NCBI RefSeq assembly: GCF_947568905.1
Contig: NC_079165.1
Location: 34,348,001 to 34,412,000, forward strand
Direction of reading: 5' to 3'
DNA length: 64,000 bases
Source: Ostrea edulis
Lineage: Eukaryota
Below the pieces are notes generated by a model. That model was not told the DNA's origin, ran no database searches, and saw only the letters and a program-made list of their open reading frames with translations. Made by a program: the position numbers and the translations under genes. Shown in pieces: positions 2,909 to 24,790 of this stretch (its first letter is position 1; each line of letters opens with the position of its first letter).

Positions 2909-3623
2909 CTGCAATGAAATTATTATCGAAAGTGAAAAAAACATGTCCGAATTTTTTCCTTAAAAGACAAAATAAATTAAATCAGAATAAGTGCAATACA
3001 ACATACACTAACAACATTCAAAACGATGATGATACACTAGCTGTATAAAACTAAAAATCACAAACTTTAAAACACATTTGCAGAATTATGAAATCGAATA
3101 GATCAGTCACACCATACTGGATAGTACAAACAGAAACAACAGGCCCATGGACCACATCGCTCACCAAATTGGCACTGCTGTTTAGCTGTTGTGATTTTTG
3201 AAAGATTTTTTTCAATCTTTATTCCCATGAACAATTTGACCCCATATGGTGGTCCCAACTTATCCCCAAAAGGGTCACAATATACTTGTAGATTAGTTTC
3301 CCAAAAGTTTCTATATAGCACAGTTCAAAAGTTACATGTGGACTGACAAATACATGTAAACGAACTAGCCTAAAACACCAACACCTCTACTCCCTGATCT
3401 TCCATCTTGGGAAATACTGAATGTAAAATTAAAATATATCTTTAAAATTGAAGATGAAATCTAAAACAAGGACACCTCAGAGGTTCCAAATCTACAGTGT
3501 CTTGCAACCAAGATGCTGCAGAGAATATAGTATGAAAAATCGATACAAGTAATGTGATATAAAGGTAAATCTGCTTGGTAACTGTCTTATAAACATAACA
3601 ATTATTATAATATAATTACATAC

Positions 3624-3703
3624 TCGATCTTTGGTTCTTTATGAAGTACAGCTGAAGTCGCTCTTTCAACGATTTTTCATTTGTGAAAAACTCGACCCTC
3701 ACT
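3624..3703 (-). CDS. slo2: Slo2/KCNT channel first shared exon ([26 protein letters not shown])
   Basis: Poly-T acceptor tttttcag| and donor |gtatgt; 80 nt, entered in phase 2 and exited in phase 1. Matches [31 protein letters not shown]. Confidence 0.93.
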
Positions 3704-5300
3704 CTGAAAAAAAAAAGAAAAGTTATTGGAAAAATATCATACTGTATCCCTACTCAAATTTAAGGAGTTTACAATTAACTTCCTTCCTGTCAAATATTTA
3801 GAGTATGCTAATCATTAACTACCTACATCACACAACTGTAAATGTTTAATACACTTTAGCAATCACGTTAAATGCTACAATGTCACGCAAGCATGAAGTC
3901 ATATTGCAGCAATTATGATCCACTAATCATTAATGTTCTGACACTCCTGGTAAATGGATGTTCTTGGGCTAATTTGTAAATATTTGGATTTGAAAGGCAC
4001 ACAATTTACCAGTGAAAAAATACACATCAATATTGAAAATGAACGGTTTGTTAACCTCTGCATAGAATATTAAGGAAAACTCACATTCTTTAAAACAAAT
4101 TGAGATCATTGCGTAACATATTGATGAAATAATTTTCTGTCCCATAACAGTTAATGTTGTTATTCAAACTAGGTTAAAGCCGAGTTGCACAATCCAAAAA
4201 GTGTTTTCCTTTGTTGGGTCAAGCTAATGTCATTTGGCACCATTCACAGATTTCCCCGTAAAACCTTAATATATTCAGACAGTGTTATCGTTCGGGTATT
4301 GTTTTGTATTGTTTTATGACCTAGAACCATACAGTTCATAGGTTTAAGTAGAATAAGTAAACATAAATATAAACAAAAGTTATACATAAAGTGAATACAA
4401 TGCAGGTTAGGTAAATGGACACGATTCATTCAATGTATAGATAGTTGATGCCTGTGAGATAGTAAATATAGTTTGTAACATAATGAATATGAAATATATG
4501 GTAAAATTGAGGATAACCTCAGCATTATGTATGCATTTCAGTTCTTGATATTGCATTTTGTTAAACATTAGGCATAATGTGGTACATTGCATTGCGAGCA
4601 CTTAAGACTGAAATTAAGATATCATCCACTTAAGTTTATAAAATCTCAGGCCAACAAGATACGGCTTTGTGAGATTTTAAAAAAGAATGGTCGTTATAAT
4701 TCAATATAGATGAAGTTTTTTTACATTGTAAATTTGACAGAAGTGTATACTAGAATTTCTCTGTCCTAATCTTTAGAGCTTGCTATTTACAGTTTAGGGT
4801 AATTCATAGGTTGCAAGTTTATAAGAATGCTGACGGAAAACTGAAGATTATGCCAATAACTTTCATGAATGGGTAAGTCATTTATAGCTCCGACAGAAGG
4901 CATTTGCATTACATGTAACAATTCATGCGTTTTCTGCAATGCAGTATTACAGAGATCATGCAATAAAATAGTTCATTTACATTATACTAAGTATTGAATA
5001 CTAGTATCGTTTTTTTGCATGTGCAGAAGGAATAATCATGATAATGCTTGTGTTTATCAGAGATCCGTAATACATTGGCTAAATCCATGCATAACAGGTC
5101 CAAATTATACCTCACTGTGGAGCACCTCACTGTAGAACCAATCACCAAAAATGAATTTTTTTCTGTAGTACTAGACAAGCATTACTGCCAAGTCTTGGGT
5201 ATCTTTTATTTCAAGTTCAATATAGGATACATGAAATCAATAAAGGACTGAAAGTGAATATTGTTGATAAATAAAATGTCAATTTATCTAATTGTAGAGT

Positions 5301-5640
5301 TGATTGTTTCATGGTATATTGTTTAACGTCCCTCTTGAGAATTTGTAACTCATATGGAGATGTCACAAAGACCACTAAAGGGCTTCAAATTTAGGCCTAT
5401 GCTCAGCGCTTACTGCCATTGAGCAGTGAGGGTTCTTTAGCATGCCACACCTACTGTGACACGGGACATCCGTTTTTAAGGTCATCTCCCAGAACCCATG
5501 ACATTCACACCTGATGCCGAGCGTTTTGCGATGGAACTGTCACTACCTGTTTCAACGACTTAAGTTTGTCACTGCCAGGATTCGAACCCTGACCTTCCAC
5601 ATGCGGGCTGAACGTGCTACCTCTAGACCACCGCGGCGGT
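5301..5640 (-). mobile_element. tRNA-derived SINE, full length (family A, tRNA head)
   Basis: The reverse complement begins accgccgcggtggtctagagg...ggttcgaatcctgg (A and B boxes). Body and 3' part match other copies (ctcaaaggccgtaagcgc...gagtgaaaaattctc...acgttaaacaa). Confidence 0.75.
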
Positions 5641-5968
5641 AAATGTAAAATTAAAGGCCACAGCAAGAGATTTTTTTCTTCATATGTAGAACTTTAGAAT
5701 ACTTGGTAGTTTCTGACTAATAAGAATACAAAATCAGGCTAGGTAATAAAAGGGCACAATTTATGCCCATGGGAATTCCAATAGACTGTTGGAAGACTTG
5801 CTCTTCAATGACTACATAGATATTATCAATTGTTACAGTACTTTTTAGTAATCTTCAATATGGTCTGTAACACTTATTTTGATTTTTGTATTTTTGTACT
5901 AAGTATGTAAGTAAACACAATAAAACAGTTAGTAAAACAAACATAAGATATTTAGTCTTTTTTTTTTT

Positions 5969-6270
5969 TTAGGTCTGCCAAATTATCTTTTAGATCTGTC
6001 AATTCATCTTTCAGGTCTTTAGGTCTGCCAAATCATTTTGAAGGTCTGCTGAGTCATCTTTCAGGTCTGCAGAGTCATTTGTTTAGGTCTGCAGAGTCAT
6101 TTATTTAGGTCTGCTGAGTCATTTGTTTAGGTCTGCTGAGTCGGTTGTTTAGGTCTGCTGAGTCGGTTGTTTAGGTCTGCTGAGTCGGTTGTTTAGGTCC
6201 GCTGAGTCGTTTCTTTAGATCTGCTGAGTCATTTGTTTATAGGTCTGTTGAGTTGTTGTTTAGGTCTACT
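5969..6270. repeat. 22-bp minisatellite (aggtctgctgagtcggttgttt)n
   Basis: Units recur 22 nt apart (e.g. 6129, 6151), degenerating at both edges. Confidence 0.9.
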
Positions 6271-6351
6271 TCAGTTCAGAAAACTGTGGACCTTTGTATA
6301 AAATCTTAATCCTCACAGCAAACAAGAAGTGGAGTTCTAAAATATAGTCCA

Positions 6352-6615
6352 GTGGGGATCCGGGTTAGAATAGGTCCTCAGTATATCCCTTGCTTGTCGT
6401 AAGAGGTGACTAATTGGGGCGGTCCTCTGGTTGAGACCGCAAAAACTGAGGCCCTTTGTCACAGCAGGTGTGGCACGATAAAGATTCCTCCCTGCTCAAA
6501 GGCCGTAAGCGCCAAACATAGACCTAAATTTTGCAGTCCTTCACCGGCAATGGCGACTTCTCCACATGATGGAAAAATTCTCAAGAGGGATGTTAAACAA
6601 TATACAACCAACCAT
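6352..6615 (+). mobile_element. SINE family A, non-tRNA-head variant
   Basis: gtggggatccgggttagaataggtcctcagta...cttgcttgtcgtaagagg...ctcaaaggccgtaagcgcc...gttaaacaa. Near-identical copies at 40912 and 61345 (minus). Confidence 0.75.
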
Positions 6616-7247
6616 CTAAAATATATATTGATCATAATGTTTATAATTATGATCAGGTCTCTGTGAAATGATTGCACCTTTAATGTGTTAATAACATATC
6701 GAAAAGTCAGAAACCTATTACTGAAATTTGAGAACAAGAAAAAACCATGATAGAATTCATTGTGCCATATAGAGTTACACAATTATTTTTCCCTAACTAA
6801 TAGTATGGAGAAGCAAAACAAGAGGCCCATGGGTCTTAAAGGTCACCTGAGTAACATAAATCAGATGTGTTTATGGGTAGATGGTGCAGGTGTGTACTCG
6901 GAGAACGACTTAATTCTTCTGGTTTGGATTTATAAGCAACCTTTGTGCCAATTTTGAATGAGCTGCTTATATATCTCTCAATTACTAAGCTGTGGTCCAG
7001 ACAAAACTTTTTTAATACATGTAGTTTAAACCATAATTATTTCATATTCAAACTTACCGGGTACAAAGGCATAGCATCATCAAATAGTATTCAAACAAAT
7101 CTTTAACAGTGACCTTGGCTTTGGTCAGATAGAGTAGTGACACACATCTGTTCGATCATAAGCAACCTTATACAGAGTGTGAAGTAAATGCAAAGGAGTA
7201 AAAAAAATTTTAAAGATGTAAAGCATTTTCAGTTTATAAGTCATTCA

Positions 7248-7591
7248 GAACCTAGGACTGGATGAACAATAACCCTGAACTAGGATGAACCTAGGACTGG
7301 ATGAACAATAACCCTGAACTAGGATGAACCTAGGACTGGATGAACAATAACCCTGAACTAGGATGAACCTAGGACTGGATGAACAATAACCCTGAACTAG
7401 GATGAACCTAGGACTGGATGAACAATAACCCTGAACTAGGATGAACCTAGGACTGGATGAACAATAACCCTGAACTAGGATGAACCTAGGACTGGATAAA
7501 CAATAACCCTGAACTAGGATGAACCTAGGACTGGATGAACAATAACCCTGAACTAGGATGAACCTAGGACTGGATGAACATTAACCCTAGG
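7248..7591. repeat. 39-bp minisatellite (gaacctaggactggatgaacaataaccctgaactaggat)n, about 9 copies
   Basis: cctagg recurs at 7251, 7290 and onward every 39 nt; copies are almost identical. Confidence 0.95.
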
Positions 7592-8514
7592 ATACAAATG
7601 TCATCGAGTTTGAGTGCTAGATTTTCAGAGTAAGAGTTAACATATCTCCTTTCCTAGGAGCCTTAACATGGTCTGGTCCAGGAACCATTAGATTCACAAT
7701 TTTAATTATCACTACACACCCACTTCTTGTGCTTGATATTCAGGAGAAAAGAAGATGGTTATATACATATTTAAATAACAGCATTCTTATTTATAACTAC
7801 ATATCATTCCTTAGAGCTCCATCCTGAAAACTGGACCCCAGTTCCCTCAAAATTCACACATTTCATGATTTTGGTCAACTCACCTCTATCATGTCTATGT
7901 TAAGTTAATTTCCTAGATACACACACACACACTGAACCCTTATTCCAAGGTCATGAATTTTACAATTTTAATAGCTTTCATATTAATTTTAAGTATAATA
8001 ACACTTAATTTTCATGTCAGATAACCAAGAGTAAAAATAATTTATAAAGATTGTACTTTTTTCAAGGTTTAAGCCATTCCCTGAGTATAGCTATTAATTT
8101 CCAAAAGGCGAGGACCATGCACATGAGGGGAAGGGAGGGGGTGGGCATGGATAGCAACAGACCACCTAATCAGTGACCAACAGGTGACCTAAACATTGTG
8201 AAAAATCATATCTCAATAACTGACATATTGCTTATAGTAGTACAATCGTACCACTATGCTAATGATATTCAGTACGATAATGAAACAGAAAACTCCCAAC
8301 ATATGTCAATCCAAGTGAAATATTTGAAAAATGTATCTAATAGTATATTTATAAACTTATCTATAAATATCAATGGGAAAATAATTGGAAATGTAAATAT
8401 AATAATATGCAATGTTTTTCTCCTTAAATTTTATCAGTATAAAATTATGCCATTAATTTCCATATCATCGATCTTTTAAGGATATACGATTGCAAACGTG
8501 GGAATCACACCTGC

Positions 8515-8785
8515 GATGTAGTCACTTTAAATTCTCAGATATCATTTCCCACCTCAAAGTCTGGCAACACATGGAGGATATCATTACTATCTGTGATGTA
8601 GTCACTTTAAATTCTCAGATATCATTTCCCACCTCAAAGTCTGGCAACACATGGAGGAGATCATTACTATATCAGATATCATTTCCCACCTCAAAGTCTG
8701 GCAACACATGGAGGAGATCATTACTATATCAGATATCATTTCCCACCTCAAAGTCTGGCAACACATGGAGGAGATCATTACTATA
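8515..8785. repeat. Tandem repeat, 4 copies of a 57-bp core (first spacing 80 bp)
   Basis: cagatatcatttcccacctcaaagtctggcaacacatggagg at about 8536, 8616, 8673 and 8730. Confidence 0.9.
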
Positions 8786-8990
8786 GCTATTCATTGCATA
8801 TGATCAATACGGCATGATCAGTTTACCTTTTATAACACGATAAACATAATTAATTTCCTTGTTAAAAAATACTTTACTCCAAGATATAATACACTATAGC
8901 ATTAAAACCTTTACAATTCACACAACAAGCTCCCATGAGACTTAATATTCTAAATCTGAAATTTTCATTCCATACATCAGGCAAACTTAC

Positions 8991-9160
8991 TTTGGTGGTG
9001 GGGGTAGGTTATCAGAGTTCATGGAGAGCCGTTCTACCCCACTACTTCTGTGCCCTTGGTTCCTTCGATATCTGCCCCTCCTTTCCCCTGACATATTACT
9101 GAACGGACTGCCAGGTCTAGAATTTACTCCACCCCTATGATAAAACCAAACATTGGACAT
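8991..9160 (-). CDS. slo2: Candidate alternative first coding exon of Slo2 (MSNVWFYHRGG...SDNLPPPPK)
   Basis: ATG at 9160 with an in-frame stop upstream; 56 codons plus 2 nt, then a perfect |gtaagt donor. Phase 2 fits the 3703 acceptor. Confidence 0.65.
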
Positions 9161-12100
9161 GTCCCCGCCTATAGAACTCCTCAATTACAGCGTAAATTCC
9201 AAGAGGTTCGCACTTACACTGGACGATATGACAGCCATTCGGATGATTATTTGTAGTCTATCATTGATCACAAAAATCTAACACTCATTTATAAATCATT
9301 AGCTAAGAGGATTTAAGAATTTTCAACATCAACAAACACTATTCTTCACTAGGAGTACTCTTTGGAAAAAACCACATCATATATTAGAACAATGCAACTT
9401 GTTGATATCTTGAGGCACAAGAGTGAAGCCTTAAATTCCCAGCTTCCCATAAACAGCCATCCAAACTAAAAGAGCACTCATTCCAGAATTTTAAATAATT
9501 ATCAGTGTAGCGCATGCTGAGCACAAAAACCTCCTCCAATCAATCTGATATCGACAGAGTCACAGTTGTCACTGAACTGAGGAGACATATGTGGATTTTC
9601 CATGTTTTATATATACACCTCACTGTTGTTACATTTTTCACCTGAAGACAGCCAGCCACACACCCAGCTGGTGAATATGCTTGGAGAGAGGGAACTATAT
9701 TGACTGCTACACAGTGCTTTACAAAATTGGCACCATTGTTCAGTATCAATAGCTGGCTTCCTTTTGTCTGTCGTTTATCTATTTATAAATTGTTTAGCAT
9801 GCATGCATCCCAATGGAAGCTTTATTTTTTCATTTGTTTTCCTTGGTTTCAGATGACAGTCAAATCTATTTCCATGGTATGACACACCTGAATGATAACA
9901 GACACTGAAAATTGCTGTCCAATTAGGCTGAGATAATTTTAAGTTTAAATTACATGTGATATTAGAGACACAAAATCAATATGTATGATATAGATTAGTG
10001 GATCATCATAAAGTATTAAATTCTAATAATTTTTTTTTTTTTTTTTTTTTTTTACATATTAGTATGGTATTTTAAAATTAAAAAGATGGACATTTCAATT
10101 TTGTATTAAAATTAGTTTAAAATATAGTATTTAACTCATATTCAGAAAAGAACTGTGTATCACTGATAATTGTTCATTTTGCCTGTTATTTGTACATGTG
10201 TATCAAACTGATCTGATGTATTTTAAAAATGTTAGAACACTTATGAAATCTATTAAAGACCACTGATTTTTAATACCAGCAATGTTATCATCAGGGAATT
10301 TACTGTGCATTTAAAGAAGTGTCCAGGCTGGGAAATGGATCTGAGGGCTACCTTCAGGCTCCCAAACCAGCAGGAAGCTAAATTCCTAGAAGCTCCATGC
10401 TTCTGGTAAACCATGGAAGAACATTTCTCATCTGAAAACTACAGGTACTTTTATTTAATGCAAAAGTTCAAATGACCATGTATATAACAATATAAAATTA
10501 CATGTCTTGGATGGAAAATTCCCTTAAGAGATTGACAAAGACGGTAATATATTTGTCAGTCAATCTCACTGTTAGTGTCAGTAAGGATGGCGATTATATA
10601 ACGATGAAGTCTGTATTTTCACAGAATTATGGCTATGTCAATCAATATGCAAAATTAATGATATTTGCTCTTTTACTGACTGAAACATTAGAAGGCATTT
10701 AGTCAAACACAGTACAGTGGTTTTGCTCTGTTATTGTGAACCTGTACGGTAATAACCCCCTCAGCCAATGTCTCAACCACTGGTACAAATCCTTTAGACA
10801 TGTAAACTATAAATCAATTACTCTGCCTCATCAATTCCCAGTGAGAATATTACATGTATATACCAACTGACTATATTACAAGTTACAGGATTATAAAGTG
10901 ATATATTGGTATTACTTATGAATTCTGAACGGGAAGGGGGGGGGGGTGTGTGTGTTTCAGGTAGGTATTTTTTTCATTTTTACATGTTTTCGATTGCCGA
11001 TTTATCTTTTCTTTGAGTTCCACATTTCTTTAATTCATGTCATTTAGTGAGTTGAAATTAAAAGTCACCTGTTATGAATTACAATTTTCTTATAATCTGT
11101 CTATAGGTTCGATCCATACTCATGGTATTCTTGACACACACACACACATATATATATCAGTCTTCACAAAAAAATCATCACAGGACATTCGGAGAGACAG
11201 TCTAACACATTTCACAGGATGGAAAGAATTTTCACAATGAATCTTAACACATCCAAAACCCTGATAACCTTAAATTATTCGATTTTTATGCAAATTTTCA
11301 ACAGTTGTAAATGAAGATAAATTTCATTTTTGAAAATACATTCAAGAGTATGATCTGCAACGCATCATGTCGGCATACCTCACGAAGTGCATTAATTTAA
11401 AACATAACAAAAAATATGCCAGTGTACCATCTCTACGGTTCTTATATATTCGGTATATAAGAAATAACAAACTCAGTCAATCACAGATTTTTAATCAATA
11501 ATATTTACAAATATCCAATTCTTGATCAGAGCTCATCTGCTTCCACAACAGAAATACAATTCTGTTTACCAGCCAACTCGGCTATTAACAAATAAGCTAA
11601 TTAAGCCCTTGAAAGCCTTGTGCAGGCATGTAAGGTCTTTATTAACCAAGGTTCCAGCTTACCTAACCAAGCAATTTTACTGTCTTCACCAGTTGACTGC
11701 CAACATCAAACTGACTGAGAACTCAGATTCCTCAGTTTATAAACCCTATAGTCATGTGACCACTTAGAGATTCTAAATTCCGGAAGCAACTCCAACAAAA
11801 AGAATGGATATCATATGATTCAAATTTCATGCAATTTTGCAGTTCATATTTTACACATTCCACTTTCAATTCTGTTGAAATTCCCAGTTGTGAAAATAGA
11901 CATACTATGATTATCAAGTAGTTCTGTATTCATACGCGAATTGTTTACAACTGCAGCGCATTCATGAAAAAATGCCTATCATTACAATTTGTAAAGATAT
12001 CAAAGGCAAAATCATATTGCATGGAAATGTAAATACATGTATTAGTATTTATGATACAAAATTTATGACATTCCTTGAATTTTGGACAACATGGGCAAGA

Positions 12101-13651
12101 AATTGTAATTGAAGAACTTTAGGTTGCAGGGATGAAACCAGGTATGAGTGGGGAAAAAAAGCTATATAGTGGTTGCTTGAGATTGTGTACATAGGAAATC
12201 AGTTATCAAGTACAAAAATTCTCATCATTGTATCGATACAAATCCTGAATATGTCATAAATGGAAATGCTTAATTGATCTTCGATCTTCTTCTTTGTGTT
12301 GACAATTGGTTGCCATGCACACATTGTGGATTAAATTTGTGCCAATCAATTTGCAAGATAAAAAAAGTTAATTAAAGAACATATGAAAAGAGAACAATTA
12401 CAATATATCTAGATTTTGTTTTAATTGAGTTCAGTTGCTGTTCACTGTACTGTGAAGTATCACAAAATTGGACAAGCGATAAAATCGGTTGGTAGGCATG
12501 CAGTTCAACTCAAAGTGCAGAGGTACATGTATGTGTATGTAATTAAAGAAAAATCAAAATGAGTCAATTTTCAAGGGACGAGATGAAAAATTACATTTTT
12601 GGATGATCTTTAATTTATGCATGTAAACAGGATAAATTTACAAAACATAAGTAAAAAAATAAAGGTTTGTCGATATCCCATTTCAGAAAAAATAATAAGA
12701 TGGAGGTTTTTTTTATTTTTATAAACCCAAATTTGTGCTTACAAGAGAAATAATTTGTGACTTTCTTGGGTCAAATGGATGTATAGTATATTGTTATTAG
12801 AAATGGCTATTAATTAAACTGTCAGGTTAATTATTTCATCATAGACCATGATAAATTTTACCGGGTTTGGTTTGGAGTCTCTAGTGGTGGCATGCATCCA
12901 AGAGACCTACTCTGTTCGTATTATATGGTACATACTGTGAATTCACCCTATTAAGCGCCCCATCTACTATAAGCCCCCCCCCCCCCCCCCCCCCCCCCAG
13001 CAGGACTTTTTTCAACTCTCAAAAATTCCTGAACATGATCTGTTTGAGTGACCTAAGTGACCAACAAAAACACTAATAGAGCAATATATAACTGTCCCTG
13101 CCTCTTTTCAATTTATTTCAAATGACGAGTTTAGATTTCTGGGTGTCACTTTGTGAATGAAACCCGAAGACAAAATGGTGAGTATTCATTGTACGCTATT
13201 TTAATGAAGTGTTAGACGTGATGTGTCATAACAGAGAGAGAGAGAAAGAGACAGAGAATAAATATCTTGTATCTGTCAGCATTAATCATCTGATCTGTTT
13301 CTGTTGGTTGCCCACCAAACAATTTTTGCTTCAATGTTTACTAAATAAAAGTGGAAACATTGTGTTCAGAGAGCATGCCGTTCTGTCCTTGATTACTACC
13401 AATCATTGATAATTTAATAAGTTTGATAATTATAAATACAATGGTAGGGTTACCTAACCATGAAGCTTGGACTTAAGGTGTACTAAGTGAATTGGTACAT
13501 GCAAAAATCTTTTGTTCAAGGTTGGAAAAATTTACTAATTACTCATTAAAGAAGATTATAAAATATACATGTATTAATCATGTGTTAATGATGATATTGA
13601 ATGGAAACAATTATGACACTATAGTGTGTATTTGTATGTGTGTATAACTAC

Positions 13652-14900
13652 CAACAAGAGGCCCATGTGCCATGTCGCTCACATGAACTACCTTGGCCCT
13701 GGTGTTGTTCAAGGTCAACACCAAACTATAACAAGGTCTTGCCATAAAGAACCTATATACAAAATATGAAAGGCCTACCTTAACTAGTTTAGGAGATATT
13801 ATATAGGTCAGGTTTTTCTTAAAGTAAGTCAAACTCCAAGATCAAAAGATCGAACACCATTGTGTCACAATCTCCTGCCATAAAGAATCTCTATACAAAA
13901 TATGAAAGCCCTACCTAAAATAGTTCCTGATATACTTAATAGATGTTTTCTTAAAAGTAGATCAAACTCAGAGTTTAAGGCCACAAGATCAAAGGACATG
14001 ATATGAAATGAAAGGTCTTGCCATATAAGAAATTGATGATAATCATATAATACAAGATATGAAAGATCTACCCAGGATTTGACACTAAGGCATGTCCGAC
14101 CGGTCGGGTATAATGTCGACTAGTCTGACTGGTCGTGTTGAAAAAATAAACAAGAAACTTTACTTTATTTAATTAAACCGCAAGATATCTTATTCTTAAC
14201 TAAAAGAAAATAACTGTAAAGAGTTTGCAAGCAATCTTGAACCGTGTGATGGAATAATCTCTATTTTTAGTTCTAATAATTTAAATAAGTCGCGGTCGGA
14301 AGTGATGTTTTAATTTTAAACAGTTTATTTGAACTGACTATAATAAAGTGTTTATCAAGTTAATAAATTACGTCGTAAACAGCTATTTAAAGAATATCTG
14401 TGCCGGGTAGAATTTAAAGAAACAGAAAACGTGTTTGAAAATCAAATTGAATGACGAGATTTAAGATATTTTTGAGACAATTAAATACGTTTTGGTTCAA
14501 ACTTAACGTTTGTCATTTAAATGAAGTATTTAAATATGGAGAAACTATCAGGGGTTTTTTCTGGAAAGTTGGTCAGGGCTAGTGGATATAAAGTCAGGTC
14601 TAGTAAAAATCATTTGAAGTAGTCCGACTGGTCTAGTGCTCAAAAAAGTAAATGTCAAACCCTGCTACCTTAGATAGTTCAGAACATATTGAATAGGTAA
14701 CATTTTTTTAATTAAAAGTAGGTCAAACTTCCAGGTCAAGGTCACAAGATCACACATAAGTGGATCATCCTTTAAGGAATGTGTACATAAAAATATGAAA
14801 TCCCTAGCTTAAATAGTGAATAGACAAGTTGTAAATCCTTAATATAAAGTCATAATAACTGCATGTCTTTCTTTTCAATTTCACAAGTAAAAAAAAAGGT
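13652..14900 (+). mobile_element. Helentron/MITE-like non-autonomous element (aacaagaggcccatg...gctcac terminus) with nested insertion
   Basis: Terminal motif is shared with 3136, 6817, 27474-28231 and 40757-42211. Internal repeats of the form aaatatgaaagccctacct. Right boundary approximate. Confidence 0.55.
14073..14664. mobile_element. MITE with CAGG TIRs and 5-bp TSD (ctacc)
   Basis: caggatttgaca ... tgtcaaaccctg; ctacc directly flanks both ends; it interrupts the host repeat. Confidence 0.75.
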
Positions 14901-15821
14901 TGGGGTTGGAAATGGTTATTTTGATTTAGAATGTCTAAAATAAAATTGATAAAATATTGCTGGGAAATGAAAACGACCTAACCCCCACCTTTCTGCATTT
15001 TGGAGGCCTGATTATCATCATCTCCTGCATGGTTATGGATCCAAATATGCTTTTGACATTATACCTGTCTGCTTGGATGTTTTCAGATCTCGTTTCGGGA
15101 TTTTTTTTCCATTGCATGAAATTCATTTATTTGGTCTGTCCATTTTAAGTTTGTCTGTATGGCCACGGTGATACAGATATATTTAGCTGCTGGTACAATT
15201 ACAGACTATTTAATATATTATAATAGTTACTCATCATTATGATTATAGGGTCACCTAATCTGTTGAACCTCCAGGTTGATCAAGTGGTTTACTAATTGCA
15301 TGTGTGCTGATTTGTATTGTATATATGTATGCATCTTATTTCTCCTCCACACTGATGTAAATTATTTTATGAGAATAAAGTCATTGTCATATAACTTTAA
15401 TAAAATAGGTGCATGTGCAGGCCGCAGGGCAAGCACAGGGGCTTGTCACAAATTGACCACCTGTATGAATATAAATATAGAAAAGGTGGTGTCAAAATTA
15501 AAAAGACTAAAAATATGTGATGTCCGCCCCTGGGCTGTGGGCATGTGGGACATGCAAATTAAAGAATACTTTTTAAAAGACAGCTGGGTGGAAATCAGCT
15601 GGATTACTCTGATAACATGTGATTCTAGTTTCCATTTAAATGAATCGTTACAACAACAATTTCGAACTGTTGAGTATCATACAGATACAGATAACTATAA
15701 TTCTGCGTCATTTAAATAATTAATCAACACATTGATTTCTCAGCATTGTATGGCTAGGCTAAATATTATTTGGATACAGTAGATTATACTAACTACCGAC
15801 TTCACCATATTAATAACTAAC

Positions 15822-15943
15822 CTGTCGTCATTTTGACCATGGTGACTAGATTCCCCCCAGATGAGGTCCCTAAACCTATATCTTGGTGGCAATGGAGGAA
15901 CCTGTGAGTAGGATTCTATAAATTCCATATCATCTTCAAACAT
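15822..15943 (-). CDS. slo2: Slo2 alternative first coding exon, Slick/Slack-A-like ([41 protein letters not shown])
   Basis: Matches the KCNT2 N-terminus [25 protein letters not shown]. ATG at 15943 with an upstream in-frame stop; donor ag|gttagt, phase 2. Confidence 0.92.
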
Positions 15944-17331
15944 TTTTATATCTTGCCATACTCAGCTTCAGTATCTCATATTGCCTATCTATACGAGTTA
16001 TAATTTACCGCAACGAAGAGTATATACTTGATAAATGAGATCAATCGTTAGCACAACTATTCAACAAAAATGAATGTATCTAATCAAGTATCGAAAATAA
16101 GTATTTAAAAAAATTGTATAAATTTTTTATATGAAATTTGATGATACCAGTCAATGATTTTCGTTTTGTTCGTTGTGATTTGAAAAATTCTAAAACCTTA
16201 CAGATTCGTGAATACACAGTGGCAGCCAGCAAATGAATGAGATCAGAGATGTTTAACAATGTGAACCAATTACGGTAATACCATCAATTAATTATTAAGA
16301 TAAAACCCAACTCTTTGTTATTTATTTCATGTCAAACAATAAACAGTTAAACGTAACTCACTCCACAAACAAAACGTTTCGAATTTCCTCAGTTTAACCG
16401 AGCTTATTGTACAAGTCATTCATGAATGAGGGATTGATTCTTTTAGGCACTGTGAGTTACGGAAGAAGTTTTTACTGACAAAAAAAAATCTCGCAATGAA
16501 TGCCAGGACTTTAAACATGTTAAACGTCAATTTCGGTAGTTTCTGTGTACACAAACATACACTGCACTGATGCGAAAAATGCAATAAGACAAAGGATGAA
16601 ATCTTGCCCATTTAAAGGGTGAGATTTTTTTAGGGGGTTGGGGGTGTTGGTTGGTTCTTTAGGTGAAAGTCTATCAACGTCAAGACAAAGCAGATTTTGA
16701 GGAATTTTCTATACAATGTATACATGTCTTGTTGTGTGAACCAAATAAATGCACCTCCTATTCAAACACAATAAGATCTGTCATCATAATTCATTTATTA
16801 GAATTTCAACATTAAAGTAATTTAGTTTGCATTGGCATTACTTGACGATGCTGATTTCACATATATATAGGCCTATTCATTTAGAAAGGCAAATAACTTT
16901 GGACAAAAAGACGAGAATTTTACAAAATACATTTAGACATCTTCTCAGCAGGGGAGCATGCAGCTGTAGCAGGTTTTTCTTTTTATCATACTGAGTGCAA
17001 GCCAGTAAATGATTAATTACTAGCAGTTTGCTAACTGCCACGCCAAGTATCTAAATACATCCAAGCTAATTGAAAGCTTTTTTTTATTCCAATACGTGAT
17101 ATCGGAACTATCAAATTTTGGAACTCTTCTGTAAAAGAAGTCCCAAAAATATTCTGCTTCACTAGGACAACTCTTGTATACAAAGTACCGATGGCTAAAG
17201 ATGATTTAATTCTTAATATGAAAATATCTGCCTGATTTGAAGATTAATTTTCAGAATGTTGCAAACAAATATCCTACTACCAAAAACATGAGTTATAACT
17301 TAAATTATTGGATTAAATTTCTGATGTTTCA

Positions 17332-17667
17332 TAGCGGAGAACAACTCAAAAATAATTCAAATATTTCCTCTACCATGTGTGTATATTTACTCACTTTGTT
17401 AGATTTTCAAGAGTCAATGCATAACAACCAACCGCAATGTAATGAATATTGTAAATAATCACATTTTGTTGTGCATCAATCTCAAGGCACATAGTAACAA
17501 CAACAACCCCCAACAACGTTTCGTAGCGGAGAACAACTAAAAAATAATTCAAATATTTCCTCTACCATGTGTGTATATTTACTCACTTTGTTAGATTTTC
17601 TAGAGTCAATGCATAACAACCAACCGCAATGTAAGTTGTGCATCAATCTCAAGGCACATAGTAACAC
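17332..17667. repeat. Local tandem duplication (two copies offset 192 bp)
   Basis: tagcggagaacaact...aaccgcaatgtaa...gcatcaatctcaaggcacatagtaaca at 17332 and 17524. Confidence 0.85.
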
Positions 17668-20654
17668 CCGGTAGATACGGATGAAAAGCACGATTGATTC
17701 TATCATGATACAATTAACTAGTTTTACCAATCTCATACGTAATTTCTTATAGAGACGCTCATTGATTCATTTATTTCAACAAATCCAATCAAAATGCTGG
17801 ATAGATATAATCTAGGTAATCTAAATGCATAAACCAAACACATGTTGTAAAGTTTTATTCCCAGCAATCGCGTCGGCTCAAAATTATGAGAAGGACCCAT
17901 TTAGTCGTACTATTCGTGAGTCCTTCGATGTGTACGTCGGTGCAAGGCCGACGGAACGACGAATTTGGAACACTCGCACCCACTTCACTTCACATGTGAA
18001 GTATTTTTCCCTTTTAAGACTTTATCATCAAATACGAAACTCATCATTTTCACATGCAGACATCAATTTATTAGCTGGTCACTTTTTATCATAGTGATAA
18101 ATGGTAGTGTAAGGTTGAACTGATGAATTGAAATAGTGTATACTGAGTATTCTGAAGGATACCCCTACCCCTCTACGATTTTGGGATTTGGGCAGAACTA
18201 CTTTTCTTGCTAACTAAGAATTTTCATACAAATATGATTGCAACAGTAAATTAAACTTTTATCCCCCCCCCCTTTTCACTTCCAAAAATGACACTTAGTG
18301 TCTGAACTCATTATATCCAATACATGTTTAAGTAGTGTGCTTGTATCTACTGAAAAGTTGCCCAAGTTAACGCAGAAAACAAGATCTTGTTGGACAAATC
18401 AATTATTAAATCTGCGACCAAAAATCCTTTTCACCGCTTTTGTGAGGCATGAATCACGACATTTTTCACAATTATTTCCATGTCCCTGAATCAGTATCTA
18501 TCATGTATCACATACATAGTAACCAAGCAGCATTTTTTTTTTGGAAAGATTTTGAATGTTCAATGAATTTTATTATGGAATTGGAATGTGAAATACCACT
18601 GGAAAAGTATATATATGCATTTATACAAAAAAAATGTAGTAATTTGTCAGCACTAGATATATACACTTTTGAAGTTCTTGAAGCACTTTTAAAAATTCTG
18701 GAGTGGAATTGACCAAAACTCTTAGCATGTAGAGATGACCTGTTCCCTAATCTTCATCTTTGCTAGCCAAGGGTTTTCAGTCCATTCCGCTCTCTGAAAA
18801 CTCTTGGCTATTCAAGACTTTTATACTTTCTCTTTCTTCATGATGCTACTTCCCTCAATGAGAACATTTTGTACATTTGCCAATGTGCAGATGTCACAAT
18901 GCATCAAGTCCAATTTGAGATCGTATCTTAACCAGTCCCTGTGAAATTTCCTGCTAATTATTTTTACATTATGGTGTGGAAAGTTTTAGACTAAATCAGA
19001 TGTTTGAGCTGCTGGGGATAAATAAAAAGATCCTGATTTGGAGTAAAGTCATACACAGCTAATTGCAAGGGTCAGAAGCTGCAAGTATACACCTTCCCAT
19101 TTTGACAAGCAAAGTGCCAAAAAAGAATGGTGTACATAGTTGAATTTGGTTACCAATATTTCAATTTAATTTGCTATGTGCTCATCAATAGTGGCTAACC
19201 ACATGCTCATGAAATATTTGCTAGCTTCAAAAACAAACACATAAAATTTAAGATATATTCATTAATGAACTTGACCACAAAACTACATAAATCGTGCAGC
19301 AATGATAATTGATGTACACAGTATCTCTGGTTACAGTTTTCTCAACAGAAGTGGACAGGCTATAGTCTAGCTAGGCTATGGCTGTCCACTCCTCTGAAGG
19401 AGATAAAGTTATGACCTGTGGAGATGATGAATCCAGTGAAGGAGACTTTAATTATACAATGTAAAACAATTGACCGCAATACCCATCCATCGTCCTGTAT
19501 TACACAAATTATAAATTTCTGTCAGGCCTAATTACCTGGAACCTTTGTCTGACCAAAACATTGTTCGCACTTATTCAACATGAGCTTTCTGGTCACAGGT
19601 GTTTATCTGACTGAATTAACAAACAAGAGACAAAAAAAGACTCTTATTATTACAAAAAATGATTTTCACCACTTTTGAATTTCTTTTCACCACTTTTGAA
19701 AAAAAAAATTGCCAAACGGAGAAGCCCAGCTAAAACATTTTCTGCTACATGAAACACTAGTCCTTCTGTTGCATTCAGCTGATCTGCAAGCTTAATAAAT
19801 TGAATCTTTTTGAGGTAATTAAGGGCCCCTTACCACAGTAGACTTTGATTTTGAAGAATAGATCATATAAGTGAAATATTGGCTCTTTGAAGTTCTTGGA
19901 ATTGCCCTTAATTAAAGTTTCAGGAATTGAATCCTAGTGCTCGGTGTGTGATTATATTTACATGTATTAAGTAGTCCAGCCTTAGGTTAATGATGAAGAT
20001 ATATACTTTGGGCCCTGATGCATGTATTAGTATGATGCCATCATGCCAGTTAGTCACCAGAGGTTGTTCTCCATAGTTCTGGCAGTGAGTATTAACTGTA
20101 TAGTTGAAGCTAAAATGGAGTGATACAAAGTGAAATGTAAACTCTAACTGCAAATGTTCCATTTTATAGATGTGCTTTTTACCAATGAGTATTAAGTATA
20201 CATGATTGTAAGAATAGTATTTCTCGTTGGTAAGGAAAAAATCTTAATCATTGTACATGTAATTAATATCATGAATTCACTCTTTTCTCAATACGCTATA
20301 GAGATAATGAGTGGAAATGTTTAGTGTATATAATATATGCAAGAGCAATGAATGATTGGTGAGTGATCAAGGAATAAATGAGAAATATCAAAGTTGCAAA
20401 GCAAAAGCTAGCGAAATGAAACACAGCGTAAAAGATTGAGCACAAAATCAATGGTCAGAAAATGAGTGATTTTTATGGACTGAATCACTAATATGGCATT
20501 GTATCATGAAAATTACATCAGCACTGCACAACACAGTGAAAATAATTTATCATATATAAATGTTTTGTTATAAATGTTTTTTATTTAAACAAGGAATATT
20601 GTAACATTATATAATTTATATAATATATTTTGAAAAAAAGAAGATATGTTTTAA

Positions 20655-20969
20655 GGTAGTACTCTACATCATCATAATGGCTGACTTCCTTTAAAAACAT
20701 GGATGAAAAAATTGATATCAGCAATATTTGACTTTTCCTTTTCCATTTAAAATACCTAGCCGAGTAGCTCAGTAGCTTAGAATACCGACTGATGAACTGT
20801 GGGTCGCATGTTCGAGTCCAGCAGGGGTTTTAAATTTTTTTTCAGATTACCTTCTACTAAAACTGTATTTTTTAACAAAATGAATTTGAAAATTTTCAAC
20901 TTCAAAATATTGTTGTACATATCCTCCACTTTTCATCTACATTAAATTTCTCTGGTGTAGCATACCTCC
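20655..20969. mobile_element. TTAA-flanked non-autonomous DNA element (Kolobok/piggyBac-like) containing a tRNA-like segment
   Basis: ttaa|ggtagtactctacatc ... ggtgtagcatacctcc|ttaa; imperfect TIR of 11/16. Confidence 0.55.
20759..20827 (+). pseudogene. Degenerate tRNA-like sequence (tRNA-Phe-like scaffold, GAT at the anticodon position)
   Basis: gccgagtagctcagt (A box) ... gactgatgaact ... gttcgagtcc (B box). The acceptor stem cannot pair. Confidence 0.55.
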
Positions 20970-21336
20970 TTAACTCTTAGATATAAACATTAATTTCCCA
21001 TGAAAGTTTTTTTTCAATACACAGTAAAAATCTATGGCCCTTTGACCATAAATGATAAATTGATGTTCTTCTACTTTGATGTATTATTGATTTTTTTACT
21101 CATTAGATGAAGCTTTTCATTTTATAAAAGTCAAACTAAAGCAAGCTTTTATCTGTTCACAATTTTCATGGAACAGTTTATCAGAATGAGAAACATGGAT
21201 TTTCTAGTGAAGTGCTAGTTCCACCGACTTTTCAGTTAATGCTAATGCAAACTTTCTTACATGTTCAATGTAATTTTATATTCTGTAGAGGTAGCATATT
21301 CTGGATCAACAGCTGATCTGCGTATAGTAGTATTTA

Positions 21337-21818
21337 TAGGGGTGAAATGATACAGTACCTTCTCGATTCGATTTTCAATACTTTAGTCTCGATTCAATGA
21401 TTTTCGATTCAATACAATAGCATGTACCAAATTCTTTATAATGCTAAGATTTTTTATGTTTCATGGTATTTATTGCTTTCTGCAAATAAATTCTACATAA
21501 TGTAAAAACATTTAACGTAAAGCAACTCTCTTATCACTTGTCCTAAAGCTGAAATGTTGCCATACCCAGGATTTATACGTTGGGGGTACATTTTTCAACT
21601 TGACTGCGTCCAATTTGATACTGCAAAGTTTAGTCGTACATTGATTGGGCAATTTTCAATTTCATTGGCCAATCAGAATCCATGTTATAAAAAACAATGT
21701 GTGCAATGATTCTAGAACTGTATCGAACCGAAACAGACCCGGAATAAATCGAACATCGAATCGAGACCACTGCATTGTGATTCGGCCGCATCGCGATGCA
21801 TCGTTTCCCCCCCTTAAA
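21337..21818. mobile_element. MITE-like element with taggggtgaaa/tttccccccctta ends
   Basis: Imperfect terminal inverted repeats and internal tcgattc/gaatcga repeats on opposite arms; TSD unclear. Confidence 0.5.
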
Positions 21819-22838
21819 CTAGTAATATTGTTCACGTTCTGTGTATTTTTACAAACATTGTATTCAAAGGATTGAAATTTACACCTTGCAGCATTTTGTG
21901 CTCATTTTCATGTTTGAATTACACAGTTTTAAATTCACACAGTGAATCTTTTATTACTCGCTTTAGAACTTCATCTCATAAATTGAAGGTCGAAGTTGGC
22001 CTGAAGACATGATAATATTGTCAGAGAGTGACGGTTATGTACTGTTTGGGAGCTAAATGTCAATACAGAAGACGAGTTCCACTGTATTTTAATATATATA
22101 CATGATGACTTGAGAAAAAATATGTTACGTAGAGAATATAATTAAAACGAAATTTATTGAACAAAGCAAGGTCAAAATTATTACAATCGGCAACCTTCTA
22201 CAAGGAGGGAAATTTTGTTTGGATGTGCCAAATCTTAGAAATATCTGGGTAAGAGAAATTGTTAGCTTATTTATTTAGAAATGAAAAAGTGATTTGAGGC
22301 TTACATTAGAAGTCTCTTCAATGTTGTGTGTAGCTAATAGGAATTGATGGGATCCTGGTACTAAATAGAATTGATTTCAAGCAAATGTATTTTTATTAAA
22401 CTTTACTCTGGCATTCTTATCTGTAAAACATGGTTGCATCAGAAATATAGACTCATGACATAGCATCAAAATTATCTTTATTCCCAAAGTCACTAATTCG
22501 GTCCCTGTGTTCGATGTACATGTAGTATTACATGTATATGATTTATTACCCTACATTTCTCACAATAAACTTTCCTTAACTAACCAACATTTTAGCAGGT
22601 GATTCTTTTGATAATGCAGAGTTGGTAGTGAAGTGTCCTTATCATTGACACTTAGAGGTAATTTCTTATCTGAAGGACAGGAGGTGAACTCTGTGAGAAT
22701 TTCATTACCATCTGCCTTAGCTCCTTTTGTAAGACCAACACGTAATACTAACACGTACACAATGATTTCATGGATATTTCTTTCTTCAGGTGAAAGAGGG
22801 ACAACTCTTACAAATCAACCTAGAATGCGTTCAATACC

Positions 22839-23154
22839 ATGAGAAGGAAATGGAGAGTATTGGTCGGCTGTATGGTAATCTTTATTCTGTTTGTTTCCTA
22901 CAAAATACTGGAACCAGACATCAAAGGAAAGGTAACCCAGGTGGAAGCAGATAGCAAAGGGCTTCCTGTGGCAAGGGAAGACAACTCTGATGCGGAAGAA
23001 GTGGAGACTCCGCGAGACCCAGAGGAGATTGTGAAGGAACTGCGGCAGAAATATTGGCTAGATTTCAGCTTTCCTTTGAAGGACTCCCCATGGCGTTTGG
23101 CAGAGAGAATGGTGAATGACAGGAAGGTACATCCGGAATATGTTCCAGAGCTAG
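22839..23154 (+). CDS. FAM20B: FAM20B glycosaminoglycan xylosylkinase, coding exon 1 (signal-anchor and stem)
   Basis: Acceptor at 22789, ATG at 22839, hydrophobic VLVGCMVIFILFVSY after basic MRRKWR. SPWRLAERMV...VHPEYVPELG resembles FAM20B. Donor g|gtatga. Confidence 0.93.
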
Positions 23155-23213
23155 GTATGATAATGTATGATTTCTCTCACTATATCCTACAGGATAAAAC
23201 TTGTATATACTTA

Positions 23214-23431
23214 TATTGTATACCGGGTAATTTTATCCCCACCCCCTTTTTGGCCCTTTTACATTTGGAAGTGATTTTGATTTTGTCCTGTTTTAAATTT
23301 GCCCAGACACAGGATATTATAAGAATCAAAGATCAGAGATTTTGAATTTGCCCAGTCTTAAATTTGCTCACCGACAATGAGAGAAAAAGAGGTGAAAATA
23401 GAGTGGGGGTGAAGATTTCTCCGTATACAGT
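23214..23431. mobile_element. Short MITE
   Basis: tgtatataccgggtaattttatcccc ... ggggtgaagatttctccgtatacagta inverted ends. Confidence 0.55.
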
Positions 23432-23516
23432 ATCTGTATGGAGAAGATCTCACAAGAGCAAATCAGAATTTGTAATTCTGGTTTGATGTCTTACATATAC
23501 AATGTACAGGAATCTT

Positions 23517-24477
23517 TTTTATACGCCCGTCATTAGATGGGACGTATTATGTTGTGGCACTGTCCGTGTGTCCATCCGGCTGGCTGGCTGTTCATCCGTC
23601 CGTCTTGGGTCATGTTTTCCAGACTTTTTTCCATAACAGATGCATGTACAACTTTGAAATTTGGTCCCAATATCTCCCTCAAGAATTGTAAGAGTGAGTT
23701 TGCATTTCAGCTGGATTGGTCCATCCTTGACCTACTTTAGGGCTATAAGTAGGTCAAACAATTTTCTGGACTTTTTTTCGTTACAGATACAGATATTGCC
23801 CTGAAATTTACACATAGGCTTCCTTTCAGAGGAATACAAGTTTAGTTTGCATTTCAGCTGGATTGGTCCATTCTTGACCTACTTTTGGACTAAAAATAGG
23901 TCAGACAGTTTTCCGGGCTTGTTTTTTTCATTACGGATACAGATATTGCCCTGATATTTAGTCAAAGGCTTCCTCTCGGAGGAAGACAAGTGCAGTTAAC
24001 ATTTCAGCTGGATTGGCACACAATGACCTACAGTACTTTAGGGGTAGAAGTAGGTCAAACAGTTTTCCAGATTTTTTTTTTGGTATGGTCAAAGGTATTG
24101 CTCTGAAATTAAGTCAAAACCTCCCTTTCAGAGAAATACATAATCAGTTAACATTTCAAACATTTCAACTTAATTGGTGCACCATGACCTACTTTAGGGC
24201 TAAAAGTAGATCAAATGGTTTCCTGGACCATAGCTGGACCTTAGCTGAACCAATATCTATATCATAGATAGATATTGCACCGACATTTTGTCACAACCTC
24301 ACTCTCGGAGAAATACATAATCAGTTTACAGGTCAGATGGATTGGTGCACCATTACCCACTTTAAGGCTTTTCTGTTCAGAATGTGTGTTGTATCAATTC
24401 ATAGTGCACAATATGCTTCCAGGTTGAATTTCACTGTCCGATGGGCGTATATTGTACCATTTGCGGTACTCTTGTTC
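23517..24477. mobile_element. Helentron-like element with internal ~150-bp tandem units
   Basis: ttttatacgcccgtc start and gatgggcgtata...gtactcttgtt end. Repeated cagatattgccctgaaattt / catttcagctggattgg units. Confidence 0.6.
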
Positions 24478-24599
24478 TCTTCTATTTCAAACAGTATATG
24501 TTCACTTGCAATGTACATAGTTAAAAATAAATCTGAAGTGGAGCAAAAACCTTGTTACTAAACCAGTACACATTTATAGTATGGAGTAACTTGACTTAC

Positions 24600-24790
24600 C
24601 TCTCTAGGTTGGTCTCGGAGCCATAAGCATAGTTGAGAATATCTCTATCGGGACCTAACCCGAATGCTGGAACTTTCTGATACCTCACATTCTTCATAGC
24701 TCTAGTTTTGTTGATTCTGTACCTCCTCCGAGGTTTGATAGGGTCATTTTCCCCCTCCTCACTCACTAAAGAAGATGATGAACTGAGCAT
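24600..24790 (-). CDS. slo2: Candidate distal alternative first coding exon of Slo2, nested in FAM20B intron 1 (MLSSSSSLVSEEG...YGSETNLER)
   Basis: ATG at 24790 with an upstream in-frame stop; 63 codons plus 2 nt; perfect ag|gtaagt donor. Phase 2, like the other first exons. Ends in ...ER immediately before the shared V-R-V-E-F exon. Confidence 0.62.

Follow-up and report, generated by a model that had tools for sequence, protein, structure and literature searches.

Three conserved alternative N-terminal exons predicted for a single Slo2 (KCNT) potassium channel gene of Ostrea edulis

The stretch of Ostrea edulis DNA analysed here, hereafter the window, consists of 64,000 nucleotides of contig NC_079165.1 (positions 34,348,001 to 34,412,000, assembly GCF_947568905.1). 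The minus strand of its positions 1-24790 is the 5′ end of a Slo2/KCNT potassium channel gene, which continues past the start of the window. Upstream of the first exon that belongs to the shared channel body (exon 2) lie three candidate first coding exons, A, B and C, and the question raised by the locus is whether one channel gene really opens in three ways and, if so, whether this arrangement parallels the alternative N-termini of mammalian KCNT1 by independent origin. Sequence comparison with relatives indicates that A, B and C are genuine, that they serve a single Slo2 gene as alternative 5′ coding exons, and that they are under purifying selection. The fuller reading, that they are mutually exclusive and that each is spliced in phase 2 to exon 2 of the same gene, is given a probability of about 0.85.

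The coordinates, start codons, upstream in-frame stops and phase-2 donors that the initial annotation had assigned to the three exons, and their fit to the exon at 3703, were all reproduced from the sequence (see the table). In each exon, an in-frame stop lies 7-9 codons ahead of the opening ATG, and the length is 3n+2 nucleotides (phase 2); joining A, B and C to position 3703 yields the junction codons K, R and R, respectively, with the reading frame open through VRVEFF. Their order on the gene's strand is C, B, A, at distances of 21 kb, 12 kb and 5.3 kb upstream of exon 2, and the N-termini that they encode, counting the junction codon, are 64 (C), 41 (B) and 57 (A) residues long. The anatomy of the window and the gene models of relatives thus show 5′ coding exons that are mutually exclusive, bring their own ATGs and are phase-compatible with one shared exon. 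The three peptides carry different motifs: B has PPLPPR, which fits the pattern PxxPxR; A has LPPPP adjoining the conserved segment and a basic, serine-rich block, HRSSGVERLS; C combines a basic stretch, RRRYRI, with a tail, DILNYAYGSETNLE, that is strongly conserved. Any role for these motifs is a matter of speculation.

Table. Features of the Slo2 locus in the window; residues in parentheses are completed across a splice junction.
Feature	Positions	Strand	Length (nt)	Exon end/donor	Encoded sequence and remarks
Exon A	9160-8991	-	170	AAA/GTAAGT	56 codons + 2 nt; MSNVWFYH...HRSSGVERLS..NLPPPP(K)
Exon B	15943-15822	-	122	CAG/GTTAGT	40 codons + 2 nt; MFEDD...VPPLPPRYRFRDLIWGE..NDD(R)
Exon C	24790-24600	-	191	GAG/GTAAGT	63 codons + 2 nt; MLSSSSSLVSEE...YGSETNLE(R)
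Exon 2 (shared)	3703-3624	-	80	GTATGT	VRVEFF...IKNQRS; entry phase 2, exit phase 1; long pyrimidine tract and CAG on the acceptor side
Exon 3	2908-2815	-		GTAAGT	SLRIRIFNFAIKLLTCILYIVRVISDSVPTE(C), opening SLRIRIFNFAIKLLTCILYIVRV
Exon 4	308-219	-			(C)SQQQIQAQNTSSCHVTLDPDVFKDNKVIN(W); conserved island against C. angulata
FAM20B-like first coding exon	22839-23157	+			open reading frame; matched in tblastn by first exons of Fam20C-domain genes

The identity of the channel is given by exons 2-4, which encode the conserved segment V(R/Q)VE(F/Y)..NE... that precedes S1 and the start of S1 itself. Together they are 93-100% identical to a KCNT2-like protein of the oyster Crassostrea (Magallana) angulata (P0057) and are matched by KCNT fragments from many animals. 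The protein sequence of exon 2 is 100% identical in C. angulata and in the scallop Mizuhopecten, exon 3 is 93% identical to P0057, and exon 4 corresponds to approximately residues 122-151 of the same protein; the nonsynonymous to synonymous rate ratio (dN/dS) of exons 2 and 3 against C. angulata is 0.01. The orthologous gene of C. angulata, which encodes Ion_trans_2, Slo-like_RCK (x2) and BK_channel_a domains, is the closest full-length match, with 67-100% identity per exon in a species that differs from that of the window. In O. edulis, the exons for the pore and for the two RCK domains of the C-terminal half lie past the window's start. The intron between exons 3 and 4 contains a homopolymer-like run of G/C (2097-2130) that reads as poly-proline or poly-glycine. 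In Mizuhopecten, the 3′ part of the true exon 3 recurs in the intron immediately behind it as a tandem series of about 30 or more degenerate copies (LTCALYIVRVSMDSL-like; locus L008, 62400-65300).

Open reading frames (ORFs) of at least 100 nt that run from an ATG to GTRAGT were counted across the window: there are six in phase 2 on the minus strand, whereas each remaining strand/phase class, of which there are five, contains 0-2. The excess is present, yet a single ORF such as A could be accidental; because one such ORF is possible by chance, the exons were tested by conservation. The G+C content of all three exons is 0.43-0.48, compared with 0.32-0.37 in their flanks, an elevation that is suggestive but not decisive. 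When positions 1-30000 of the window were compared by blastn with the whole C. angulata locus, only seven same-strand islands could be aligned: C, the first exon of a FAM20B-like gene, B, A, and exons 2, 3 and 4. The island of A begins precisely at its ATG, and that of B begins 16 nt upstream of its ATG. Against C. angulata, synonymous sites are near saturation (dS of at least 1) and exons A and B have dN/dS values of 0.11 and 0.02, respectively, while exon C differs at proportions of 0.20 of nonsynonymous (pN) and 0.78 of synonymous (pS) sites; against two other oysters, the dN/dS of exon C is 0.15-0.20, and third-position changes dominate. Over all these comparisons, the ratio for C spans 0.15-0.26. 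By tblastx, no further convincing conserved coding block was found between C and exon 2 beyond B and A. The comparison with other bivalve genomes by tblastn that had been proposed as a check on the initial annotation located A, B and C-position exons at syntenic places in C. angulata, Mizuhopecten and the clam Ruditapes. The proposal of three alternative N-terminal exons feeding one Slo2 exon has therefore held up: the exons are conserved, they bear the marks of purifying selection, and models from relatives show every type spliced onto exon 2.

A-type exons were found by tblastn in C. angulata (E=3e-27, 79% amino-acid identity), Mizuhopecten (E=2e-12) and Ruditapes (E=5e-11). Isoform X1 of Ruditapes philippinarum (XP_060580155.1) starts with MSYLWFYH..., contains HRNSGV..LS and ends with LPPPPQ-VRVEFF, and a protein of the snail Candidula (CAG5135868.1) has the same A-type tail joined to exon 2. 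A-like starts (MSNVWFFH, MSNVWFYR and MSNRWFFR) are present in two horseshoe crabs and the spider Stegodyphus; in shuffle tests, the similarity of A to the chelicerate sequences gave p<=0.0005 for Tachypleus and Limulus and p=0.036 for Stegodyphus. The Slo2 proteins of these chelicerates share the start MSNVWF[YF][HR] with exon A, but their exon is longer and ends with DSLDN..Q.IPR, whereas the molluscan A ends with HRNSGV..LS..(L/I)PPPP. In Tachypleus, the A-type N-terminus (XP_076347971.1) comes from a single 5′ exon that lies 13 kb ahead of exon 2 and is spliced to it; the 10 kb upstream of this A-type exon yielded no B-type exon. Judged from these alignments, the A-type start is common to molluscs and chelicerates. 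The A-type exon of Candidula is immediately followed, on its downstream side, by a tandem repeat of 30 nt that encodes SPIPPLPP (locus L010, 10272-10565). The last 22 residues of the Tachypleus model, which is partial, (VNKGQYQIMLPSLSSVVCNQVS) correspond to a long array of tandem units of approximately 60 nt (locus L011, 45800-59000), and the model probably ends in a satellite mistaken for an exon.

A word search with exon C returned ORFs that are 81% and 67% identical in two other oysters; both have the same ATG and donor position, their similarity to C ends at the donor, and the contigs that carry them contain, on the opposite strand, a homologue of positions 22793-23157 of the window. The 67% homologue falls into one 90% cluster with the full-length KCNT2-like isoforms X1 (XP_052673344.1) and X4 (XP_052673347.1) of C. 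angulata, RefSeq models that open with the C-type peptide and continue with VRVEFF. Between O. edulis and its C. angulata ortholog, exon C has 67% amino-acid identity and the same ATG and donor, and its phase-2 donor is kept in four species. Ruditapes isoform X2 (XP_060580162.1) has an exon at the C position with a phase-2 donor and an annotated join to exon 2. At the same position in Mizuhopecten is an ORF that has retained the phase-2 donor and is significantly similar to C (p ~0.001).

Exon B has vertebrate counterparts. It matches residues 58-84 of human KCNT1 (PDB 8hir; VLPLPPRYRFRDLLLG..QNDD) with E=4e-4, and carries the Slack-A/Slick-type motif PPLPPRYRFRDL(L/I).G...DD directly ahead of V(R/Q)VEF. 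When nine sequences, drawn from oyster, scallop, clam, ant and fish, were aligned, the residues L, P, P, R, R, R, D, L and G of the pattern LPPR.R.RDL..G proved invariant. With respect to KCNT2 (Slick), exon B aligns with a fish KCNT2-like sequence and a vertebrate Slick-like fragment over an LPPRYRFRDL..G..DD block; the vertebrate-like peptides used for comparison were the first 31-32 residues of P0046 and the N-terminal peptide of P0034, both KCNT2-like fragments from Logan runs. A partial Mizuhopecten model (XP_021341778.1) joins a B-type N-terminus to an exon 2 identical to that of the window. A search of representative proteins with B returned only short fragments and no full-length protein. 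These alignments identify B as a homologue of the Slack-A/Slick N-terminus. A, C and the Tachypleus N-terminus had no match at E up to 10 when compared by phmmer with PDB sequences, and A and C match no solved vertebrate KCNT sequence, which agrees with the statement in the initial annotation that two of the three N-termini could not be related to vertebrate ones. Overlapping the start codon of exon B, out of frame with it, is an upstream open reading frame (uORF) of seven codons (15936-15959, minus strand; ATG GCA AGA TAT AAA AAT GTT TGA, MARYKNV*). C. angulata has the same uORF, with one synonymous change, ahead of its B exon, and the stretch that can be aligned starts exactly at the ATG of the uORF. 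This uORF could regulate translation of the B isoform.

The surroundings of the three exons are also conserved. Genes with the Fam20C domain (PF06702) adjoin Slo2 in scallop, clam and C. angulata, and in O. edulis exon C lies 1.44 kb past the donor of FAM20B exon 1, which is on the opposite strand. The order on the Slo2 strand (C or a C-position exon, FAM20B exon 1 in antisense, B, A, exon 2, exon 3) is that of the window, and is kept in C. angulata, Mizuhopecten and Ruditapes. Oyster (locus L012, 10001-15480), scallop (L008, 1-4124) and clam (L009, 10001-12060) have likewise retained a head-to-head overlap between the C-type exon and FAM20B's first intron, and the annotated ranges of Slo2 and FAM20B in C. 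angulata overlap by 5.5 kb. For FAM20B, no exon downstream of exon 1 could be located within the window. With the predicted promoter region of C lying in the first intron of FAM20B, transcription of the C isoform would proceed antisense across the 5′ end of FAM20B, and a Slo2 transcript starting at C would have to run antisense through the first exon of that gene.

If three isoforms are made, each 5′ exon would supply a start codon and a distinct cytoplasmic N-terminus of 64, 41 or 57 residues, and the isoforms would be alike except ahead of the VRVEFF segment before S1. Each exon, or a leader exon before it, may have its own promoter, as suggested by mammalian KCNT1. The N-termini would tune gating kinetics, partner binding or trafficking; by the same analogy, effects on gating and partner interactions are probable.

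Several observations weigh against this reading or bear on other explanations of the locus. The exon joins of O. edulis are predicted from DNA, and those of the relatives are computational models in RefSeq and GenBank. When four low-coverage DNA runs were mapped to positions 3500-9450 of the window, their contigs were continuous from exon 2 into the intron (for example, 3517-3922); exon A was uncovered in these runs, which is uninformative either way. The similarity of the Ruditapes X2 exon to C is not significant (p=0.17 in a shuffle test), and in the C-like ORF of Mizuhopecten the ancestral ATG is missing, the only ATG being internal. The most sceptical explanation, that A and/or C are accidental ORFs with a fortuitously phased GT at their end, can point to the expectation of about one such ORF of this length per strand/phase class in the window, to a word search with the A peptide that came back blank and to a Joint Genome Institute (JGI) metagenome scan that gave A no confirmed relative, but these two blanks were shown to be uninformative by the loci found later. 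It is hardly credible when A and C are both islands of conservation amid unalignable introns, change mainly at third codon positions, occupy syntenic places in scallop and clam, and are of types used in annotated proteins; as far as sequence comparison can go, it is refuted.

For C, its distance of 21 kb from exon 2, beyond the first exon of another gene, raises the alternative that it is part of another transcription unit, one antisense to FAM20B, and lies outside Slo2 in O. edulis. This is very unlikely: in C. angulata X1 and X4, which are full-length Slo2 proteins, the orthologous exon is joined straight to exon 2, four species share the phase-2 donor, and tblastx and blastn reveal on the strand of C, as far as exon 2, only B and A as conserved coding blocks. 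A less drastic alternative accepts the three coding exons as real and has one upstream promoter and a non-coding leader serve them all, the N-terminus being set by mutually exclusive splicing. The annotated gene of C. angulata begins 4.47 kb upstream of the C-type ATG, which means that C may not be the very first exon and that a leader exon may precede it, and there is an AG 8 nt upstream of the ATG of A and another approximately 60 nt upstream of that of C. Such a leader, however, would sit beyond C, deep in FAM20B, and no conserved leader exon or island was found upstream of C in the window; moreover, the islands of A and B start at or just ahead of their ATGs, and the promoters of mammalian Slack-A and Slack-B are independent (PMC3850776). 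A shared leader is therefore considered improbable, although less so than the two preceding explanations, and three isoforms beginning at separate coding exons remain the preferred interpretation.

Two further features of the region were noted. The intron between exon A and exon 2 contains high-copy repeats at 5300-5900 and 6290-6880, with summed contig depth in the thousands in the four DNA runs and many loose ends at 6348 and 6383. A candidate fourth exon at 20790-20761, weakly matching a sea-urchin N-terminus, was rejected, as it has neither ATG nor donor; behind this spurious match is a fragment resembling a transfer RNA (tRNA) or a short interspersed nuclear element (SINE) on the minus strand at 20760-20830 (ggactcgaac...gcgaccc...).

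The N-terminus of mammalian Slack sets the speed of channel activation and determines pairing with Slick, a difference that shapes neuronal firing and adaptation. The Slack-A and Slack-B N-termini of mammalian KCNT1 arise from independent, alternative promoters (Brown et al. 2008, reviewed in PMC3850776), and in rat the two forms differ in activation speed, open time and the ability to pair with Slick (PMC3850776); effects of the N-terminus on gating or heteromer trafficking are known for these rat forms only. Mammalian KCNT1 resembles the oyster gene in having several 5′ exons with their own start codons and differing N-termini, spliced to a common exon that opens with V(R/Q)VEF, and Slack-A and exon B both carry PPLPPRYRFRDL. 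The oyster gene differs in having three types, of which A and C lack detectable similarity to solved vertebrate KCNT sequences, and in that its most distal exon lies inside an intron of the neighbouring gene. In vertebrates, Slick carries the B-type N-terminus and KCNT1 has it as the Slack-A option, whereas invertebrates appear to have one Slo2 gene in which the B-type N-terminus is one option among several. Close parallels are the molluscan models (C. angulata X1/X4, Ruditapes LOC132736955 X1/X2, Mizuhopecten and Candidula), in which the exons are orthologous and have the same order, phase and junction; among the molluscan models retrieved, no species has all three types annotated. The library searched contained no paper about bivalve KCNT and none about N-terminal variants of invertebrate Slo2. 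Individual isoforms are already present in the automatic annotations of related species, and what is added here is the recognition of the three types side by side across species.

Because B is a homologue of the N-terminus of Slack-A and Slick, and chelicerates also have A, the N-terminus system looks inherited and not independently evolved, and the description of it in the initial annotation as a parallel system is probably wrong if an independent origin is meant. A bolder scenario is entertained tentatively, with the odds somewhat against it: the choice of N-terminus may be an ancient trait of bilaterians and not peculiar to mammals, with A and B already alternative in the protostome ancestor, B dating from the bilaterian ancestor, and C added or kept by bivalves. 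The antisense overlap, kept since the divergence of oyster, scallop and clam, could then couple transcription of Slo2 and FAM20B. Vertebrate Slack-B might be a diverged A-type N-terminus, but no significant match backs a link between A and Slack-B, and none is claimed.

The locus thus presents the principle of alternative KCNT1 N-termini in a mollusc, with a modest evolutionary point added. The O. edulis gene should be annotated with all three 5′ exons, and its C isoform and FAM20B as overlapping head to head. Short conserved peptides are now defined for testing, namely MSNVWF... and HRNSGV..LS..LPPPP for A, PPLPPRYRFRDL for B, and NVRYQKVP...DILNYAYGSETNLE for C. If bivalves maintain the three N-termini by purifying selection, with one of them common to vertebrates and one to chelicerates, N-terminal switching would be an old, conserved means of diversifying potassium currents of the sodium-activated type from a single gene.

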